Below, piece by piece: positions 11,216 through 61,356 of a DNA stretch of 64,000 bases. The position numbers were made by a program, and so were the translations under genes. Positions within the stretch are counted from its first letter, which is position 1. Every line of letters starts with the position of its first letter. Origin of the DNA: Chrysemys picta bellii (taxonomy: Eukaryota); assembly GCF_011386835.1 (NCBI RefSeq), contig NC_088800.1, positions 10,416,001-10,480,000 on the forward strand, read 5' to 3'. Under the pieces are notes generated by a model, which saw only the letters and a program-made list of their open reading frames with translations, searched no databases and was not told the DNA's origin.

Positions 11216-11531
11216 CAGTGTTTCCCAAACTTGGGACGCCGCTTGTGTAGGGAAAGCCCCTGGCGGGCTGGGCCGGTTTGTTTACCTGCCGTGTCTGCAG
11301 GTTCGGCTAATCACGGCTCCCAATGGTTGCGGTTTGCTGCTCCAGGCCAACGGGAGCTGCTGGAAGCGGCGTGGGCCGAGGGACGTATAGGCCGCCGCTT
11401 CCAGCAGCTCCCGTTGGCCTGGAGCAGCGAACTGCGACCACTGGGAGCCGCGATCGGCCGGACCTGCGGACCGTCCCAGCCCGCCAGGGGCTTTCCCTAC
11501 ACAAGAGGCGTCCCAAGTTTGGGAAACACTG
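11216..11531. mobile_element. hAT palindromic MITE, TIR variant B
   Basis: TIRs cagtgtttcccaaacttgggacgcc / ggcgtcccaagtttgggaaacactg. TSD atgtaggc / gtctaggc. Small deletion in the right arm near 11470. Confidence 0.9.
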
Positions 11532-14429: not shown

Positions 14430-14641
14430 CTCAGAGTTGGTAAGACAACTCCCACCTGTTCATGCTCTCTGTATATGTGTGTATATATATCTCCTCAATA
14501 TATGTTCCACTCTATATGCATCCGAAGAAGTGGGCTGTAGCCCATGAAAGCTTATGCTCAAATAAATTTTAGTCTCTAAGGTGCCACAAGTACTCCTGTT
14601 CTTTTTGCGGATACAGACTAACACGGCTGCTACTCTGAAAC
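14430..14641 (+). mobile_element. Penelope-like element 3' fragment (copy B, direct orientation with tail)
   Basis: Same pLTR sequence as copies A and D, extending further 5' (tatatatctcctcaatatatgttcc) and ending ctctgaaac. 5' boundary approximate; no clear TSD. Confidence 0.8.
14518..14557 (+). ncRNA. Minimal hammerhead-ribozyme-like motif (PLE copy B)
   Basis: GCAU-CCGAAGA-A-GUGGGC-UGUA-GCCCAU-GAA-AGCU-U-AUGC. Confidence 0.6.
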
Positions 14642-20400: not shown

Positions 20401-23400
20401 TCTGCTGATTTTTTTTTAAAAACAGTCTCTAGTTGGATAGTCACAAAAACTGTGAGCATAAATGCGTATTTAAATGTGTAGCTACCTGGTTGCACAAAGA
20501 AATCAAGTGCTTAGACAGCTAAGTGTTAGCATTTCTGCATCCAATTTTACAACATTTGAGCATGAATTCCTAATGTAGTTGACAGCATTTACTGATTGTG
20601 TCCAGCTCTTAAAGTCCCTTCTTATGTGTTGGTAAAGTGCAGGAAGACGAGTGCATCCATTAGGCTGTTACTTCCCCATGTGGGTAGGGAATAGGCCAAC
20701 CTCTCAATGTGTCAGCCAGCACAGCTGAGCTGGTGCAGAAGAAGGAATAATCTGTGCCATTTGAGCAATGCCAAAAGACCTGGTGTTGCTAATTTCATCC
20801 ATGGGAGAAGGGGGAACAAGGATCCAAATTCTGACATTCTGAGTCACATTGTGATCCCTGGTCTGTTTCTGACTTTAGTGCAGCCATGCACTCAGGGCTT
20901 GTGATAACTCAATGATCTTGCCCTGAGGTAGCAATATCAACCCAATCCTTCACACATTTAAGAACTCTTATCAAAAGTATGAATGTTGGAGGGAGGAAAT
21001 TGCTTTTATTCACTCATTCTACATTGATAATGGAGCATTAATTTAAATCAAGATCATTTTTGGCAATGAGTCAGAAGTAACCCTCAGCCGAGGCCAGTCC
21101 GACCTTTGCTATTGCCTAGCATTTTTGCTTGTGTGTGTGTTTTTGAGCTCTTTACACATTATACACTCCAGCCAGATCATTAAGACCTCATGCTTCCTTA
21201 GCTTTAAGCCAACAAGTTGATCTTCTGGTGATCAAGCCTTTTCACAGTACACTCCTGTCATTATGATTCTCCTTTCTTCAAGATCTCAAGGAAGATTCTC
21301 CTTTTAGGAGTCTATTCTCCCAGTGATTTGTGGTGGATTTGCACATTTAAGTCCCATCAAATGTGCCCAGAAACTCCCTGCACAAATCCCCCACCTCCCA
21401 AACATAGCCCATCTCTATGCTTCACTGGGAGAAAAGACCCATTAGTGTTTTAAAAAAAGTAAATTTCAAGGTTTCCTTTCTAAGCATTCCGATGGCTGAG
21501 GTTTATTCATTTCTCCCTTTTAGTTTATTGTGCGGCACCTTGAGTTATTTGCATGATAACACACCCTATAAATGGATTATATTGTAACGTATTGTGTTGG
21601 GTTAATGCTGACAACTGCTTGGTTTGGATAGCAACTTAGATTTTTAGTTTCTGATGTGCCGTTCGGAGAAATTCCTTTTGAGGGGCATGAGGCAAAGCAG
21701 AAGGGAAGATAAGGAGGGGCCAAAAGTAGGAGTAAGTTGTATGAATAATATTAGGGAATGCTGGCACTGAAAGGAGAGAAGAATACATTAACTTCAGACA
21801 CTCTGCAAACCGGGGAGAATAAACTCAACAAAACGAAGTTCCTATCCAATAGCAATGAATATGTATTTACTCTCCTACCTTTTCCCAGGATAGCAAGTGA
21901 ACTCTCTCGTCTATGACCAGCACAGCTATGCAGCAGCTATGCTCAGAGTGTCATGCCATTATATCCTGCCTATTTATAAACTGAAGTCGGTCCTCTAGAG
22001 AAGCACTATATTTTCAGAAAAGTGGTGAAAGGAAGAAAAAATCTGCCGGCAAAAAAAGGTTAGAGTCCTCTTAGACTCGAATTTGACCATGTAATGAGTT
22101 CTGGTGGGGAAGGTTTTGTAGCCTAAGCATAAAGTGTGGAAGATATAGACTCCCCTGGCAGAGATGACTTGGCCCTTCTTCCTTCAAAAGTCAATATCCT
22201 ACAGTGTATCTGCCATCAGTTTATTTTGCTGTGAGTATTTCAGGGGATATCATAGAAGCAGGATCTTACTGTGGGCACTAAGGAGCTCACAGACTTTGAG
22301 AAACTTTGGTGTGAAAGATGCATAAAGATGCTCCTTGTTATTTTATTCTGGTGGCAATGGATTGATTGACCAATTCTAAATTGCATACAGTTCTTCAGCT
22401 TGAATCAACTGAATTGCAATTCGACCAAAGGGCAATGCCCGCCATTTTCATGACAGATCTAATGGGTTCAATCCTACACGGCGCTGAGCACACTGGCTCT
22501 CCTCCTGCAAAGCCATGAGAATATGTTTAACTTTCAGCATGTATGCGTTCCCACAGAAGTTGATGGGACAACTCACATACTTGTAATTAAGCACATGCTT
22601 CAGGATCAGGGCCAGACTACTCAGCACTTTATTGTGTCAAATAATTTTTCCATGGCTTAAAGGCAGAAGGCTAATTCAGAAGTGGAAAAGTGGGTTATAT
22701 TCCTTAGCTCGCCTGCCCATTTTGTCTTCAGTTAAAATATTTAGGAGGTACAAAGTACTTCCCTCGTTTAACTAAAATAGCTCTGTCACTTGTGAAATGT
22801 AGTGGTAAATATATTAGCAAACTGTACTTTAACTGTAAGGGTTTAACGATGAAAGCTGACCAATTGCACAAACTTCATACTGTCTTTAAATTCCAAATAA
22901 AGTGCTATCCAGAATTACTTTCTTCCAGTTTCTTGACTCACAGGCATAAATACCATGTTTTCCAGCAATTAAAAAATAAAACTAAAAATGGGTTCTTTTG
23001 GAAAACGAGGAGAAAGGAGAAGCCTTTGAAATTATAAAGTGTAACTAAACTATTGTGCCCTGTCACGAAATGTCTGATCCTATTAAAGCGCCACTGCATG
23101 TAACCAGAGTACTTTAAAGAGAACGTGGAATTCTGTGTTTACTAAAGTCTACATAGCTCAGTAAAAAGATTTGGCTTCTACACATCGTTTATCAAAAAAA
23201 GAGCTGCACAAAAGGATGGACCAAACTGTGTCCCTGATTTGTGCAATCTCATAGATGTCACTGGCATCACATTGATGTAACATAATTCTGCCCTTTTGGA
23301 TGTATAAATGTTTAGACAAAGCACGTGATTCATATTTTGTTCTATGAACACATTCCCTAGTTAAAATGTTTAGACCCGGGTTCTCCTCTTACCTACCATG

Positions 23401-23478
23401 GTGTAAATCAGGAACAACCCCACTGAGTTCAGTGGAGTTACACTTGTGTACATGTGAGAGGACAATCAGGGCCTAAAT

Positions 23479-23811
23479 CAGTGTTTCTCAAACTGGAGCC
23501 ACCGCTTGTGTAGGGAAAGCCCCTGGCGGGCCGGGCCAGTTTGTTTACCTGCCCCGTCCGCAAGTCCGGCCGATCGCGGCTCCCAATGGCTGTGGTTCGC
23601 TGCTCCAGGCTAATGGGAACTGCTGGAAGCAGCGGCCAGTACGTCCCTCGGCCCGCGCCACTTCCAGCAGCTCTCATTGGCCTGCAGCAGCGAACCGCGG
23701 CCAGTGGGAGCCGCGATCGGCCGGACTTGCGGATGGGGCAGGTAAACAAACTGGCCCGGCCCGCCAGGGGCTTTCCCTACACAAGCGGTGGCTCCAGTTT
23801 GAGAAACACTG
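23479..23811. mobile_element. hAT palindromic MITE, variant A (rearranged locus)
   Basis: TIRs cagtgtttctcaaactggagccacc / ggtggctccagtttgagaaacactg. Left target gcctaaat (23471-23478). The right side is followed by an inverted copy of the left flank rather than the TSD. Confidence 0.92.
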
Positions 23812-23838
23812 ATTTAGGCCCTGATTGTCCTCTCACAT

Positions 23839-23895
23839 CCTGTCCCGTCCAGAGCTTTCCCTACACAAGCGGCGGCCCCAGTTTGAGAAACACTG
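23839..23895. mobile_element. Second right terminus of the hAT MITE carrying the true TSD
   Basis: ctttccctacacaagcggcggccccagtttgagaaacactg followed by gcctaaat (23896-23903), identical to the left target. Confidence 0.88.
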
Positions 23896-24672
23896 GCCTA
23901 AATCTATTTGTTGTGCATGAATGGTCTGGTTCTCATGTCTGTTATTCTGGTGTAAATCAGGAACAAATCTACTGAAGTCAAGGAAGCCATGTAATTCAGG
24001 AGTAACTCCTTTCAAGTTAATGGCTCTGATTCTGATCTCACTCCAATTCTATGTTGGTGCAGCTTCATTGACTTCAGTGGTTAGGGTAGGGTAAAGATAC
24101 TCTTGATTCACATTGGTGTAGCTGAGATCAGAATCAAGCTTGAAACTTTTAGCATCAGTTTAATCTAGAATGTTTTTATGCAGTTGTTGATAATAAAAGA
24201 CAAACTTCCTTTGAAAGATAGAAATAAAATGACCATCCATCTACTAAGACTTCAGTAACAAATTGTTTAAACTTTTTACTAAAAGAATATTTGTATTTCC
24301 ACAAGAAGTTTTGAAATCTGGAACAAAATGTTACCTGTTGGCCAGATGCTGATCTCAGCTACTCATGAAGAAATCCAGATTAACTTCACTAAAACCAATG
24401 CTGTTACACCAAATTTGCATAATTGTAATTGAGATCCCACTCTGGGCTAGCTAGCGTATTTGAATAATTATTTCATAGGAATTACTGAATCCTTTTTTGA
24501 TTTAAAAATGTTATTGGATATTTCAAAATGCTAAAAGGCCAGAAAAATACAGTTTTAATCACAGCTGTGCATAAAAGGGAGTACAACTCATAAGAATATT
24601 TGGCATATATGGAAACAAACAAACAAAATAAAGCAGATTATGCTTTCTTCCATTTGGCTCGTTCAGTCTGTT

Positions 24673-24840: not shown

Positions 24841-25205
24841 ATTACACACCTTTGTGTTATTTGGTATGACTATTGTATCCATTGAGAAAGCCCAGGATGC
24901 AGTAAACACATTACAAAGAAAATCAGCATGCATTTGAAATTAAAATGAAATTTAGCATATTGTTCAGAGAGATGCAGAATGATCTAATACTACTGTTATC
25001 TGAAGGAAACACAGGGTGATCAAAATTGATAATCATTCCTCCATTGAGGGACTGATAAAACTTTAATTAAGATAATCTACTAGAAGGTTACAATGTTTCA
25101 TGTGCGACTAATTATGACTGACAAAAATATTAATTTTAACAAACATCAATTTGTAAATTGCCTGATATTTGTATAATAAAAGACATGCGTTACATGTATG
25201 TCTAT

Positions 25206-25213
<8 letters not shown>

Positions 25214-25254
<41 letters not shown>
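25214..25254. repeat. (TA)n microsatellite
   Basis: About 20 perfect TA units. Confidence 0.98.
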
Positions 25255-25367: not shown

Positions 25368-26280
25368 TATTATTTGTATTATGGTAGCACCCAGAAGCTC
25401 CAGTCATCAACCAGAACCCCATTGTACTAGACCAGTGCTTCTCAAACTGGGGCCGCCGCTTGTGTAGGGAAAGCCCCTGGCAGGCCGGGCCGGTTTGTTT
25501 ACCTGCCGCGTCCGCAGGTCGGCCGATCGCGGCTCCCACTGGCCAGGTAAACAAACTGGCCCGGCCTGCCAGGGGCTTTCCCTACACAAGCGGTGGCCCC
25601 AGTTTGAGAAACACTGTACTAGATGCTGTACAAACACAGAACAAAAAGATGGGTCCTGCCCAAAAGCTTACTATCTACGTATAAAACAAGAGATTACCGA
25701 TGGATACAGTCAGACAGATGGAAGAGTACAATTAAACAATGAGACAACATTGGTAAGTATGATAGACCATGGTATGAGCACCCCAGCATCCTAACATACC
25801 ATCCGAACATTGTGATGCTTTTTGTAGACATATTGGAAAAGCAGAGTTTTAAGGCGGGTTTAATGGAGCATAATAACTTAGTTTTGCAGATGTTCATGGG
25901 GAACTCCTCAGAAGTGTGAGGGGCAGCATGGGATAAAATATGAAGGTGCTTGTTTGAAAATGCAGAAAGTGGGCAGTGGAGGCTGATAAGGATTAGCTGA
26001 CCTCTCGATACTGAGTGAGAGCTGAGAGGCCCTGAAGGGCCCTGAAAGTAAAGACAAGTAGCTGATGTTTGATGTAATAGAGAAGGGGAAGCTAGTGGAG
26101 GGATGGAAAGAGAGAGGTGTTATGGTCAAAGCGACAAGCTAGGGAAATGATTTTGCAGCAGCATTCTGAATGGATTTGAGCAGTGCAAGTTTGCATTTGT
26201 CTAGGCCAGACAGAGAGGGATGTTGCAGTAATTGAGACACAAGAACCTTGGTGAGAAATTTAGATATCTGGATGGACAGT
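25368..26280 (-). mobile_element. L2 LINE 3' remnant interrupted by a hAT MITE
   Basis: L2-type 3' end ttattatttgtatt...gcacccag...cctgcccaaaagcttactatcta. Purine-rich body typical of antisense L2. Confidence 0.6.
25433..25616. mobile_element. Internally deleted hAT MITE, variant A (184 bp)
   Basis: Both TIRs intact. TSD tactagac / tactagat. The central ~150 bp is missing relative to the other copies. Confidence 0.92.
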
Positions 26281-32493: not shown

Positions 32494-32709
32494 GTATCAG
32501 AGGGGTAGCCGTGTTAGTCTGAATCTGTAAAAAGCAACAGAGGGTCCTGTGGCACCTTTGAGACTAACAGAAGTATTGGGAGCATAAGCTTTCATGGGTA
32601 AGAACCTTACTTCTTCAGATGCAACAAGTGAGGTTCTTACCCAAGAAAGCTTATGCTCCCAATACTTCTGTTAGTCTCAAAGGTGCCACAGGACCCTCTG
32701 TTGCTTTTT
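32494..32709. mobile_element. Penelope-like inverted-repeat fragment, second subfamily (copy C)
   Basis: Tail gtatcagaggggtagccgtgttagtctg. Arms about 32529-32612 and 32626-32709 are reverse complements. 12-bp TSD attaataatcag at 32482-32493 and 32710-32721. Confidence 0.82.
32582..32622 (-). ncRNA. Minimal hammerhead-ribozyme-like motif with canonical CUGANGA core (PLE copy C)
   Basis: Minus strand reads GCAU-CUGAAGA-AGUAAGGUUCUUACCCAU-GAA-AGCU-U-AUGC. Stem II is less regular. Confidence 0.55.
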
Positions 32710-35700
32710 ATTAATAATCAGATGTTTCAGTATAGTCTGTGTGCACAATTTGTAGGTGTAATAAGCAGGAATCACAATATGCCACCTACTTAGCTGTTAT
32801 CAGATGGCAGATTTCCATACACATCATGGCAGAGGGGAGTTTTAAGGAGGCACTGGAGGGAGGATACTGTGGTTGCTTTATGGAGCTCGAGGAGGTGTTT
32901 TCAGGCAGCATGAGAGCATGAAGGTGCTTAAGGGAGAAGTGGATAATCAAGGTTGGCAGAGCAATGGAGGGGGTTGACATCACACTGATATAATGGGATG
33001 GACAGAACGGGGCTAAATTGTGAATTGGCTTTGAAAGTAACAACAAGAAGTTTGTATCTGATGCAAAGGAGAAGCCAATGGAGAGTCTTAAAGAGGAGGG
33101 TGATGCGGGTAGGGCGATGGGCCAACCAGGATGCTTTTAGCAGCTGCATTTTGAATGGAGTTGAGGGGGATGAGGTTGCTGTACTCAGGACATGAGACGA
33201 TCATCTAGAACGTCTTGATAGATAAAATAGAAAAACAAAGGATAGGAGTATCCTCCCAGTTGTCACTCGTCTATTATAGATAGTCCCATGCAAATAGTAC
33301 GCTATCTGCCATTTTCCTGGTGTCCAGGAGGGCTTTTCTGCTAACTTCCTTGTTTCATTTCTTTCAGCTTCTAGTCATTCAAGATCTCTTAACCCAATTT
33401 TACACTAATGCAAATATGAAAGTGAAGGAATGACAAATGATTTACACCGTGGTAAGGGAAGAGAATCAGGCCTTTTGAGTCCTTTGAAGCATAAAGAATA
33501 TGCTCACTTTCACCTCACCACTCTTGTTTTCCTAACACATCAAAAAAAGGATCTCAAGCTCTAGCAAGAACAATAACATTCATTTGATCCTCACATACTT
33601 TCCAAATGCCTCCTAGTAAAAGTAATAGCAGCCCATGAATAGTTACACACAAGCAAGTCTTTTTAAACAGTTCTGTACATGTCACATCTGTGGTTTTGCA
33701 ATATATGTTGCATCTCCATGGAGAGAAACCTTTAATTGTTCAACCCAATTTTATAGCTGTACTGACACAAAAGAGTAGTGAACTGATCCCTGAACTGCTC
33801 ATAAAAGTGCATTTGCACAGACTTCTCTATGGAGTGAGCTGAAGATGCCTAGATAGTCTAATGTGAATACATTATCAAACCTTACCTTTACCTAGGCACG
33901 TTGACCACATTTTTCTGAAAACGATAGGCTGAAACATTCACAAAGTGGAGACTTAAGAAGCTTAACAATTGGTAGAAATATTATCATCCACCATCGTGGT
34001 AACATTATCCAGTCATTCCCACCCACAGACATATGCATGCATGCTGGATTTAGGCTTAGAAAACTGCAAACAACACCATAAGTGTGTGGTCCTCAGTGTC
34101 TGAGGATGAAGTGAACAGAAACGTTTCAAGCACGCTAGCTGAAAGAGGGGAGGGGGAAGGGAGAGGAGCGGATTTCCCTGCCTCAGTGACGATCATCTCT
34201 CTTTCTACATACTGCTAAACTATACTTGCCAGGTATGGCTTTTATCCTGCCTTCTGAAGAGCAAACCTTTTGCCTTTTGGAATGCACCAAATAGCATGCA
34301 GTTTAAAAAATATCACCTGGTGAAATATTCTCAGACTTCCTATAGGCCCTTCCCTCCCCTCCTTGCCACTTAGCAATTACTTAATTTAAACGCTGTTATA
34401 ATTAATGGTGAAAGACCAGCTCCTCAGAGCTCTGCACCCAAGCCGGAGGGGGGGGGGGAGACATCGACAGCTTTCTGCGTTTTGCCCCACCCCCCAATAT
34501 CGGTAGGATCCTTGGCATCAATTAAAGCAAGTTCAGAGCTGCTTTAATTTGCACCAGTTGAAAAGACTTGCTAGAGGTCATTCTGTTGGCATAGGATTGC
34601 TCAACACTCTGGCCATGCCTGCTTCTGTCCCTAGGATGCCCATCGCATTCTGCAATGCCCGGAGAAGATGGGCAGGTGGGGTGGCGTGGCATACAGTCAA
34701 TTATTCCAATTTTATGCCACCTGGGATTCCCCAGGAAAAGAGGCCGCCCTGTTAGGACACCTCATTGTTCCCTTTTCATTGCAGCAAAGGGGACAGAGTG
34801 TGTGTCAAGCCTGAACTGTCTGACTTAAAGTTCTTGTTTTAAAAATGAAGCTCAACTTTGCTTTTCTGCAAATCACTCCTATGTGACTCAAAGGGGGGAA
34901 GACGACAATGTAAGTGGACAGACACCAGCTTATTAATAAGCTTTGGGCAGGCTCAGCTCTCTCGTGTATGTGCAAATGCCAATGTTAGCATTGGAAATGC
35001 AACATCATTGGTTTTGGATAGAATTTCTGCCACCAAAGGGCCTGTAAAATCTTGCTCATGTGCACAGACCTTCCTCAGTTGAAGTCAATGGGTAAATAAG
35101 GGTTATTCACAATGAGGAAGGTTTTTTTTTTCCAAGGCTGGGACTTTATTCAGTGACACAAAGAGATACCACTTCACACCTATGATGGGCATGGGGCATC
35201 TCATTAGATTCTGGCAAGAAGGTGGAATTTTCTTCCAAGCACATCTGCTGTCTGTGGACGACATTCAGTGGAATAGATTTTTTTCCCCCTCAGCGTACGC
35301 ACATGCCAAAGCCTTCTTGCGAAAAGTACTTAATGTTCTACAGCATGACAGTCATGCGGTGCCTGCCAGTGCAAAATGAACACCCTTTCTGGGATAGTTG
35401 CCATTTGCACTGGCACCAGATCCTAGTGAAACAATCATGTTGAGGCATTTTACACATGACAGTGAAAGTGCACACATGTGAAGCGCTCCTAAGTACAGTG
35501 CTGCAGATCTTGGCACACTATTTTACATTCTGCTTAGCAATCAAGTACACATGGAGCAAGAGAATCCTGTGCCAGTGACAGTTGCAAGTAGGTGGAATTA
35601 GTACCCACATAAGCAATATATTTGTCAGCAACCTAGGGAAGAATGTGCACCAGTGTTCACTCCAGATAATATCCCTGCTGGGATTTCTGGATATACCATA

Positions 35701-37963: not shown

Positions 37964-38296
37964 CTACAGAATGCCACGTCGATTGCAGGAATGCTAGGGG
38001 AGCACAACCCGTTCAGTATGACAGGCACAGGTGTGTCCTTTCTCATGGATGGTGTTTAATACAAAACATTGTGTTTGAAATATGAACCAGCCCTTGCATT
38101 TATAAAAGATGGTCATTTGTGTAGATCCCCAAAAGATTAATTACCCCACTATTCTGTGCTTCTGCAGGAAGGAGCTGTTACGAACTAGTGCTTAGGCTTC
38201 TGACTGACTGTTCTGAATGGCTGGGTGCAAATCCTGCTCCTTAGTCTTGTGGCTTGATAAAGCCTGGAATGCATGTTAGGGTACTGAGAAGTGGAG

Positions 38297-38469
38297 AACA
38301 GGAGTACTTGTGGCACCTTAGAGACTAACAAATTTTTTAGAGCATAAGCTTTCGTGGACTACAGCCCACTTCTTCGGATGCATATAGAATGGAACATATA
38401 TTGAGGAGATATATATACACACATTCTTCTTTTTGCGGATACAGACTAACACGGCTGCTACTCTGAAAC
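38297..38469. mobile_element. Penelope-like fragment (copy D): inverted pLTR piece plus forward tail
   Basis: Minus-oriented pLTR about 38295-38422 joined to a plus-oriented tail ttctttttgcggatac...ctctgaaac. 13-bp TSD ctgagaagtggag at 38284-38296 and 38470-38482. Confidence 0.85.
38342..38381 (-). ncRNA. Minimal hammerhead-ribozyme-like motif (PLE copy D)
   Basis: Minus strand reads GCAU-CCGAAGA-A-GUGGGC-UGUA-GUCCAC-GAA-AGCU-U-AUGC. Confidence 0.6.
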
Positions 38470-51299: not shown

Positions 51300-51648
51300 C
51301 AGGCAGGCTCTACTGTTTTTGCCGCCCCAAGCAACGTGCCGAATTGCTGCCGTAGACAGCGGGGGCAGTCCATGCGCCGTTAGGGCGGCACATGTGTTTC
51401 CACGGCGGCAGCAATTTGGTGGCAGCTTCTATGTTCAGCTGCCCGCGGTGGCAATTCGGCGGCAGCTTCTGTCTTGAAGCTGCCGCCGTGGAAATGCGTG
51501 TGCCGCCCTAACGGCGCACGGACTGCCCCCGCTGTCCGGGGCGACAGTTTGGCGCACTGCTTGGGGGCAAAAACACACGGACTGCCGCCCCTTGCAGATT
51601 GCCGCCCCAAGCACCTGCTTGGAAGGCTGGTGCCTGGAGCCGGCCCTT
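51300..51648. mobile_element. GC-rich hAT MITE (CAGGGCCGGCTC-type TIR)
   Basis: Ends caggcaggctc / gagccggccctt. Perfect TSD ggtccttc at 51292-51299 and 51649-51656. Internal inverted repeat about 51359-51533. Confidence 0.88.
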
Positions 51649-59970: not shown

Positions 59971-61356
59971 CTAGATCGTTGGGTTTAACGGGTAGTGATC
60001 AATAGCTCCATGTCTTGTTGGCGGCTGGTATCAAGCGGAGTGCCCCAGGGGTTGGTCCTGGGGATGGTTTTGTTCAACATCTTCATTAATGCTTTGGATC
60101 AGTGTTTCCCAAACTTGGGACGCCGCTTGTGTAGGGAAAGCCCCTGGCGGGCTGGGCTGGTTTGTTTACCTGCCCCGTCCGCAGGTCCGGCCGATCTCAG
60201 CTCCTACTGGCCGCGGTTCACTGCTCCAGGCCAATGGGAGCTGCTGGAAGTGGCGGCCAGTATGTCCCTTGGCCCACGCCACTTCCTGCGGCTCCCATTG
60301 GCCTGGAGCAGCGAACCACGGCAAGTGGGAGCCGCGATCAGCCGGACCTGTGGATGCAGCAAGTAAACAAACCGACCCGGCCCGCCAGGGGCTTTCCCTA
60401 CACAAGCGGCATTCCAAGTTTGGGAAACATTGCTTTGGATGATGGGATGGATTGCACCCTCAGCAAGTTTGCAGATAACACTAAGCTGGGGGGGAGAGGT
60501 AGATACACTGGAGGGTAGGGATAGGGTCCAGAGTGACCTAGACAAATTGGAGGATTGGGCCAAAAGAAATCTGATGAGGTTCAAGAAGGACAAATGCAGA
60601 GTCCTGCACTTAGGACGGAAGAATCCCATGCACTGCTGCAGTGGGACCGACTGGCTAAGTGGCAGTTCTACAGAAAAGGACCTGGGGATTACAGTGGATG
60701 AGAAGCTGGATATGAGTCAGCAGTGTGCTCTTGTTGCCAAGAAGGCTAACAGCATATTGGGCTGTATTAGTAGGAGCATTGCCAGCAGATCGAGAGAAGG
60801 GATTATTTCCCTCTATTCGGCACTGGTGAGGCCACATCTGGAGTATTGAGTCTAGTTTTGGGCCCCCCACTACAGAAAGAATGTGGACAAATTGGAGAGA
60901 GCCCAGCGGAGGGCAATGAAAATGATTAGGGGGCTGAGGCACATGACTTATGAGGAAAGGTTGAGGGAACTGGGGTTATTTAGTCTGCAGAAGAGAAGTG
61001 GGGGGGATTTCATGACAGCCTTCAACTACCTGAAGGGGGGTCCAAAGAGGATGGAGCTCGGCTGTTCTCAGTGGTGGCAAGATGACAGAACAAGGAGCAA
61101 TGGTCTGAAGTTGCAACGGGGGAGGTCTAGGTTGGATATTAGGAAAAACTATTTCCCTAGGAGGGTGGTGAAGCACTGGAATGCGTTACCTAGGGAGGTG
61201 GTGGAATTTCCATCCTTGGAGGTTTTTAAGGCCCAGCTTAACAAAGCTCTGGCTGGGATGATTTAGTTGGGGTTGGTCCTGCTTTGAGCAGGAGGTTGGA
61301 CTAGATGACCTCCTGAGGTCTCTTCCAACCCTGATATTCTATGATTCTTCGATTCT
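59971..61356 (+). mobile_element. 5'-truncated CR1 LINE (RT C-terminal half plus 3' UTR), pseudogenised
   Basis: [63 protein letters not shown]. (attctatg)n tail. Flanking 9-bp atgagatgg at 59962-59970 and 61357-61365. Frameshifts and a stop at 60847. Confidence 0.95.
60100..60432. mobile_element. hAT palindromic MITE, variant B, inserted in the CR1 RT coding region
   Basis: TIRs cagtgtttcccaaacttggga / tccaagtttgggaaacattg. Perfect TSD ctttggat at 60092-60099 and 60433-60440. Confidence 0.95.

Follow-up and report, generated by a model that had tools for sequence, protein, structure and literature searches.

How an inverted piece of host DNA and a second right terminus came to lie inside the TSD of a palindromic MITE is the question raised by this locus, as neither would be present had the element simply been inserted at its target gcctaaat. 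The analysis was carried out over a window of 64 kb, by which the whole stretch of DNA is meant, and the answer reached is that the composite locus was very probably produced by a single fold-back template switch of the type 3-2-1-4, long after the MITE itself had been inserted. The arguments for this are set out below, beginning with the structure of the locus and its transposon family, followed by the copying between its arms, the limits of the copied tract and the rival explanations.

The structure of the product can be read directly from the locus. A 27-nt stretch of host flank (F) is followed by a 333-bp MITE, an inverted copy of the flank (F'), a second right end and the closing TSD gcctaaat (Table 1). 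The first-pass annotation of this DNA had proposed the same order, including the exactness of the 27-bp inverted copy, and each of these elements was confirmed at its position. In the repeat search, 23452-23634 and 23656-23838 were returned as one inverted pair with arms of 183 nt, 95% complementary and 21 nt apart, whilst the second right end and the first right end form a 57-nt direct repeat of 86% identity. Within the inverted pair, 23705-23838 is the reverse complement of 23452-23585 with one mismatch, and collinear sequence lies on both sides of it. The 27-mer of F occurs only at its two sites in the 64-kb window, even when up to three mismatches are allowed, where none would be expected by chance. 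When folded as single-stranded DNA, the region forms a single extended hairpin (-254.8 kcal/mol; z = -35 relative to shuffles). The whole composite feature measures about 450 bp, and F' is found between the left end of the element at 23479 and its right end at 23895, inside the TSDs at 23471-23478 and 23896-23903, which is the position by which a Pack-TIR is recognized.

Table 1. Features of the composite MITE locus and other copies of the family (positions in the 64-kb window; A19 and the like give the base and its position in the arm).
Feature	Position	Strand	Description
Flank F	23452-23478	+	Host DNA, 27 nt, adjoining the MITE on its left and containing the left TSD copy; template of the inverted flank copy and exact reverse complement of 23812-23838
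Left TSD copy, 8 bp	23471-23478	+	gcctaaat; 8/8 identical to 23896-23903
MITE body, 333 bp	23479-23811		Termini CAGTG...CACTG
Outer left arm, 107 nt	23479-23585	+	Template of the copied tract (from the arm alignment and consensus table)
Derived states of the outer left arm	23497, 23501, 23538, 23563		A19, A23, A60 and A85, respectively
First switch-point interval, left arm	23564-23585	+	From the last mirrored private site to the first unmirrored site
Mirror of the first switch-point interval, right arm	23705-23726
Inner left arm, unconverted	23586-23634	+	Differs from the inner right arm (23656-23704) at 9 of 49 nt
Asymmetric MITE centre (loop), 21 nt	23635-23655	+	Gap between the arms of the inverted pair
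Inner right arm	23656-23704	+	Ancestral right-arm sequence; own private changes at 23685 and 23674 kept
Outer first right arm	23705-23811	+	Reverse-complement copy of 23479-23585; 1 mismatch in 107
F'	23812-23838	+	Inverted copy of F, 27/27; inside the TSD-bounded unit
Second right end, 57 nt	23839-23895	+	Retained outer end of the ancestral right arm; G19 and G23 are family-type
Right TSD copy, 8 bp	23896-23903	+	gcctaaat
Other MITE copies in the window (n = 4)	376-708; 11216-11531; 25433-25616; 60100-60432

The focal element can be classed as a hAT-type MITE on account of its 8-bp TSD, its YARNG-type terminus, its small size and its occurrence in multiple copies; YARNG is the hAT-type terminal motif. 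Five copies of the family, of 184-333 bp each, are present in the 64 kb, all of them flanked by 8-bp duplications (matching at 8/8, 7/8, 6/8, 7/8 and 8/8 positions) and all with the termini CAGTG...CACTG or the point variants CAATG and CATTG. The focal copy is almost fully palindromic, with arms of 156 nt. The other complete copies match it at only 81-87% identity over their full length, and the family is therefore old. The copy at 11216-11531 has a 17-bp deletion within one arm; similarity between its flanks in inverted orientation, a candidate from the repeat search, proved no better than that of shuffles, and for none of the other four copies did inverted flank similarity rise above shuffles.

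No coding function was found for the family. The ORFs across the MITE copies gave no Pfam match and no relatives and are regarded as spurious and non-coding, and the 144-aa ORF at 23541-23972, which spans every junction of the locus, gave 124 word candidates when compared with a large protein collection, none of which was significant. A string search of the literature for the MITE terminus returned no paper, and the family has therefore been left unnamed. Metagenome contigs were scanned with a 17-nt invariant core of the element, which yielded 38 loci with one match each and no further copies of the family; BLAST of the MITE against 37 of these 38 loci (all but L001, from a human-gut metagenome) found only chance matches of 19-36 nt. 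A search of the whole window against Rfam gave nothing at gathering thresholds, and the sub-threshold matches of generic hairpin or miRNA-like type on the palindrome were treated as meaningless.

The history of the arms was examined by comparing the left side base by base with the reverse complement of the right side. Over the outer 134 positions, comprising 27 of flank and 107 of MITE, the arms differ once, and over the next 49 positions inward they differ nine times; this step from 1/134 to 9/49 is unlikely to be due to chance (Fisher's exact p = 3.1e-5). In the three other full copies the same outer segment contains 15/107, 7/90 and 15/107 arm differences, and at the pooled rate of these copies the probability of finding at most one difference in 107 positions is 1.5e-5. 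The near-identity of the focal arms ends abruptly between arm positions 85 and 108. From the step and from the rates in the other copies it follows that in the focal copy the outer arms, and these alone, were made alike, and the same tract continues unbroken into the inverted flank. The lone difference between the outer arms, at 23734, is a C-to-T change within a CpG that both the left arm and the consensus retain, and is most simply explained as a mutation after the event.

The direction of copying was judged solely from the family consensus, which was drawn from the eight other arms of the four other copies in the window, and from the retained right end. Relative to this consensus, A19, A23, A60 and A85 are derived, and each of them has its mirror in the first right arm. 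A19 (A at 23497, T at 23793) and A85 (A at 23563, T at 23727) are found in none of the eight other family arms in the window, so that the two pairs of changes which the first-pass annotation had described as private to the left arm and mirrored in the right, ggAgcc/ggcTcc and gcaAgtcc/ggacTtgc, are real and correspond to positions 19 and 85. A23 and A60 are CpG sites and are not private; both are also found on one arm of the copy at 25433-25616, a 184-bp copy that is internally deleted, the other arm of which has G at both sites. This suggests a sub-lineage whose two arms differed at those sites. Further inward, the focal inner arms hold five changes restricted to the left and two or three restricted to the right, none of which is mirrored.

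Copying from the left arm to the right is thus visible in the product itself, as the second right end has the consensus G at positions 19 and 23 and, as the earlier annotation had also recognized, keeps the family-type sequence. The original right arm would accordingly have carried the consensus states, the A states having apparently been brought in from the left arm along with F. The same direction is indicated by the flanks, since the left flank lies in its native context and F' does not.

The limits of the copied tract are also directly given by the mirrored and unmirrored sites. The first switch falls between arm position 85, the last private site to be mirrored, and position 108, the first that is not, and the copied tract is therefore 112-134 nt long. 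Judging from the family consensus, the ancestral right arm was replaced over 28-50 nt, but regardless of where in this interval the switch occurred the net gain is 84 bp, the sum of 27 (F') and 57 (the retained end). The first-pass annotation had held that the strand folded back, used the left arm and 27 bp of flank as template, and then returned to its original template; the core of this proposal stands, but only the outer 85-107 nt of the arm were copied and not the arm as a whole. In the notation of the four-point template-switch model, which is reportedly that of Loytynoja and Goldman, the order of the switch points on the ancestral sequence is 3-2-1-4, and one such event covers the four mirrored substitutions, the 84-bp gain and the loss of divergence between the arms. 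As the copied arms are less than 1% diverged, compared with 8-14% between the arms within other copies, the event appears to be much younger than the insertion of the MITE, although this is a very loose estimate drawn from a single substitution.

The two switch points differ in character. The first sits within 22 nt of arm identity. At the return junction, 23838/23839, no microhomology can be inferred from the family consensus, which here stands in for the ancestral arm. Compared with the consensus, the retained end has no differences in its outer 42 nt and six in its inner 15 nt (p = 1.4e-4), and its first 17 nt, 23839-23855, are aberrant and far more diverged than the rest. The first 12 nt match the left arm at 23548-23559 in direct orientation at 11 of 12 positions, a score reached by 7 of 300 shuffles. 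The aberrant 17 nt may represent a second short templated patch, or micro template switch, or else error-prone synthesis or plain old decay; by analogy, an aberrant junction at which no microhomology can be inferred would be typical of multi-step repair synthesis.

The surroundings of the locus were also inspected. The flanks at 23000-23451 and 23904-24400 are unique in the window, there is no tandem array around the site, and no host gene was recognized in the window, the neighbouring ORFs being without a Pfam match. On either side of the MITE site, 23379-23431 and 23928-23980 form a 53-nt direct repeat of 74% identity which contains ggtgtaaatcaggaacaa; both probably derive from an older interspersed repeat, of which they are fragments, and do not belong to the event. 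A (TA)26 microsatellite is found at 25203-25254. An inverted repeat at 51314-51577 has 99-nt arms that are 81% complementary, with 66 nt between them. Several ORFs of 120-140 aa, again with no Pfam match, occupy 59995-61266 around the MITE copy at 60100-60432. By eye, we take these to resemble the C-terminal part of the ORF2 of a CR1-type LINE, in which case an older LINE would have been the target of this MITE copy.

A second palindromic repeat family is present in the window, with palindromes at 1400-1571 and 32528-32710 and single-arm copies at 14517-14606 and 38295-38382, and no Rfam family matched it. The arms of the two palindromes are 81 and 88 nt long and are 99% and 97% complementary within their locus, and the two loci are 79% alike. 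In each palindrome one arm extends outward into further repeat, with the shorter arm beginning at the same place, and for this reason the palindrome looks like a feature of the family and not the result of two independent fold-backs.

A template switch of this kind would have proceeded as follows. An old, non-autonomous and almost fully palindromic hAT-type MITE would have been inserted at gcctaaat and the switch would have taken place long afterwards. A DNA 3' end in the inner right arm, at around positions 86-107, would have paired with the complementary inner left arm and not with its proper template, the switch being primed by the arm complementarity of the MITE itself. Extension of this end by 112-134 nt would have copied the outer left arm and the 27 nt of left host flank as their reverse complement, after which synthesis or joining would have been taken up again on the original right arm, at a distance of 57 nt from the tip. 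The outcome would be outer arms made identical, with an inverted host flank and a second right terminus inside the TSD. Only the fold-back switch accounts simply for four features of the locus: the inverted flank is continuous with the converted arm, the mismatches form a step, the derived states are mirrored, and a right end of consensus type survives beside the true TSD. The length of the copied tract counts against it, as 112-134 nt is at or above that of the longest events in apes and far beyond that of typical snap-back insertions.

With regard to the trigger, somewhat less than half of the weight that we give to the template switch goes to breakage of the right arm, after which resection, snap-back synthesis with the MITE arms as primer, and end joining would have taken place. 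Resection from such a break would expose the top strand as a single strand across the element and for a short way into the flank; the 3' end could then snap back on the inner left arm, be extended to the end of the resected zone and be joined to the other end of the break. The stop after 27 nt of flank would be explained by this route, because extension would there have reached the end of the resected zone. A little over a third of the same weight goes to fork switching, in which the replication fork would stall at the hairpin and the nascent 3' end would move onto its own strand (an intra-strand switch) or onto the lagging-strand template before returning; such switching has been described (PMC7954356, PMC13100816, PMC10766183). 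Break repair is slightly favoured, given the loss of 28-50 nt, the untidiness of the junction and the fact that no microhomology can be inferred there. Sequence alone cannot separate nascent-strand fold-back, an inter-strand switch and snap-back break repair.

The other explanations that were weighed against the fold-back switch differ in whether they regard the locus as real and in how many events they call for. Palindromes are difficult to assemble, and the locus could in truth be a simple MITE to which chimeric reads, or a wrong path through the palindrome, had added the extra parts. This is very improbable, as the composite sequence returns to collinearity at a place where there is no k-mer in common with the end of F' and is then closed by the correct TSD; a De Bruijn mis-path was discounted by the same reasoning, the end of F' and arm position 57 sharing no k-mer. 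Moreover, an artefact of copying would be perfect, yet one CpG transition separates the copied arms. Private changes have been kept independently by the inner arms, and a feature of 450 bp fits well within one long read. At least two unrelated events, either arm-to-arm gene conversion plus a separate insertion, or the cutting of a cruciform to give hairpin-capped ends that were replicated and rejoined, are harder still to credit and we regard them as extremely improbable. Palindromes can extrude cruciforms and so give hairpin-capped breaks (PMC7999016, a review), but several coincident breakpoints would be required, and the duplicated right end with its ancestral states is left unexplained by cruciform resolution alone. 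The conversion tract and F' are, in addition, contiguous and equally undiverged (1/107 and 0/27), so that one tract explains both.

A more specific alternative is abortive gap repair linked to a transposase, in which excision of the hAT element is followed by refilling from the sister chromatid, the palindromic nascent strand snaps back, and the nascent ends are joined without homology. Both copies of the TSD are intact and both termini are present, as would be expected from two-sided synthesis at an excision gap, and template switching in gap repair with capture of filler is a described route for TIR elements (PMC8277862). Against this, the family looks to have been long dead at the time of the event (81-87% identity and arms 8-14% apart, compared with an event less than 1% old), no source of transposase was seen in the window, and most single-copy captures are independent of transposition (PMC8277862), and the proposal is thus considered improbable. 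An origin of F' as a hAT flank hairpin (P-nucleotides) was rejected, since the chemistry would put F' beside F and not across the element.

If the fold-back switch is accepted, the locus has some value as a record. From one sequence it can be told what served as donor and what as recipient, in which direction copying went and where the two switch points lie, the first of these to within 22 nt, and the locus can be read in this way because the transposon family supplies an ancestral reference and because the old terminus survived. It further implies that the identity of the arms or TIRs in palindromic MITEs can be reset by repair, and is thus unsafe as an estimate of age, and that host flank can, in small pieces, become part of a TIR-bounded unit with no transposase involved. 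The first-pass annotation had seen here a way for these MITEs to homogenise their arms and capture host DNA; this holds at the locus, but both processes have already been described (PMC13100816, PMC8277862). Its further suggestion, that the extra end creates a longer mobilisable unit, is formally correct as to structure but found no support, the copies being 81-87% identical and the filler occurring nowhere else in the window. It is also conceivable, but rather unlikely, that palindromic hAT MITEs in this turtle genome are recurrent hot spots of fold-back switches of more than 100 nt, which re-perfect decayed arms and pull inverted flank inside the TSD unit. If so, arm identity would be useless as an age clock, the long perfect hairpins would be able to give double-stranded RNA, and composite elements carrying host DNA could have arisen whilst a transposase was active.

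Comparable processes are known from several systems. In Ripley's model, imperfect inverted repeats are said to be perfected and lengthened by template switching. The turning of near-perfect inverted repeats into perfect and longer ones has been documented (PMC7954356, PMC13100816), and the closest likeness to the present locus is the quasipalindrome template switch (Walker et al., 2021; PMC7954356), in which an imperfect inverted repeat is likewise perfected and lengthened into its flank by one excursion and a return. In great apes, the 3-2-1-4 pattern, which makes a single inverted repeat and can arise within or between strands, ranks among the two most frequent, and the tracts copied there measure 12 nt at the median and 128 nt at most (PMC7954356). 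The tract reported here, of 112-134 nt, is about ten times that median and at or above that maximum; its seed is a transposon palindrome with 156-nt arms and not a short repeat, and its return skips 28-50 nt, leaving a second element terminus. A similar outcome, on a smaller scale, is seen in the inverted repeats of yeast promoters (PMC13100816, PMC8604942), where switching also homogenises imperfect arms and extends the repeat into the flank. However, those arms are of 9-24 bp and have been studied for their regulatory effects, whereas the present element is a transposon relic with no function indicated.

From the side of transposon biology, repair-associated switching has captured nearby non-TE DNA in old TIR elements across animals (PMC8277862), and the locus resembles the single-copy Pack-TIRs (Tan et al., 2021; PMC8277862) both in its content, nearby cis non-TE DNA between the ends of an old TIR element, and, if a break was the trigger, in its route, template switching in the repair of a break within the element long after insertion. 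It differs from them in the size of the filler (27 nt compared with a median of 224 bp), in that the filler is inverted flank continuous with the element's own arm, and in that no microhomology can be inferred at the return junction; about two thirds of Pack-TIRs have microhomology at no fewer than one of their breakpoints (PMC8277862). Break repair offers further parallels. In snap-back SD-MMEJ (PMC5728401, PMC2943611) a 3' tail similarly folds on a nearby inverted repeat and primes synthesis, and in fold-back inverted insertions at breaks (PMC11724301) the product is a templated, inverted insertion whose joining to the opposite end of the break may take more than one step. The reported insertions are mostly of about 5-34 bp (PMC11724301), whilst here the long palindrome would have formed a primer of great stability and given a tract longer than 100 nt. 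The class of mechanism is already known, and the locus is a clean, unusually long and legible case of it, in which the direction of copying is resolved and the old terminus has been preserved.
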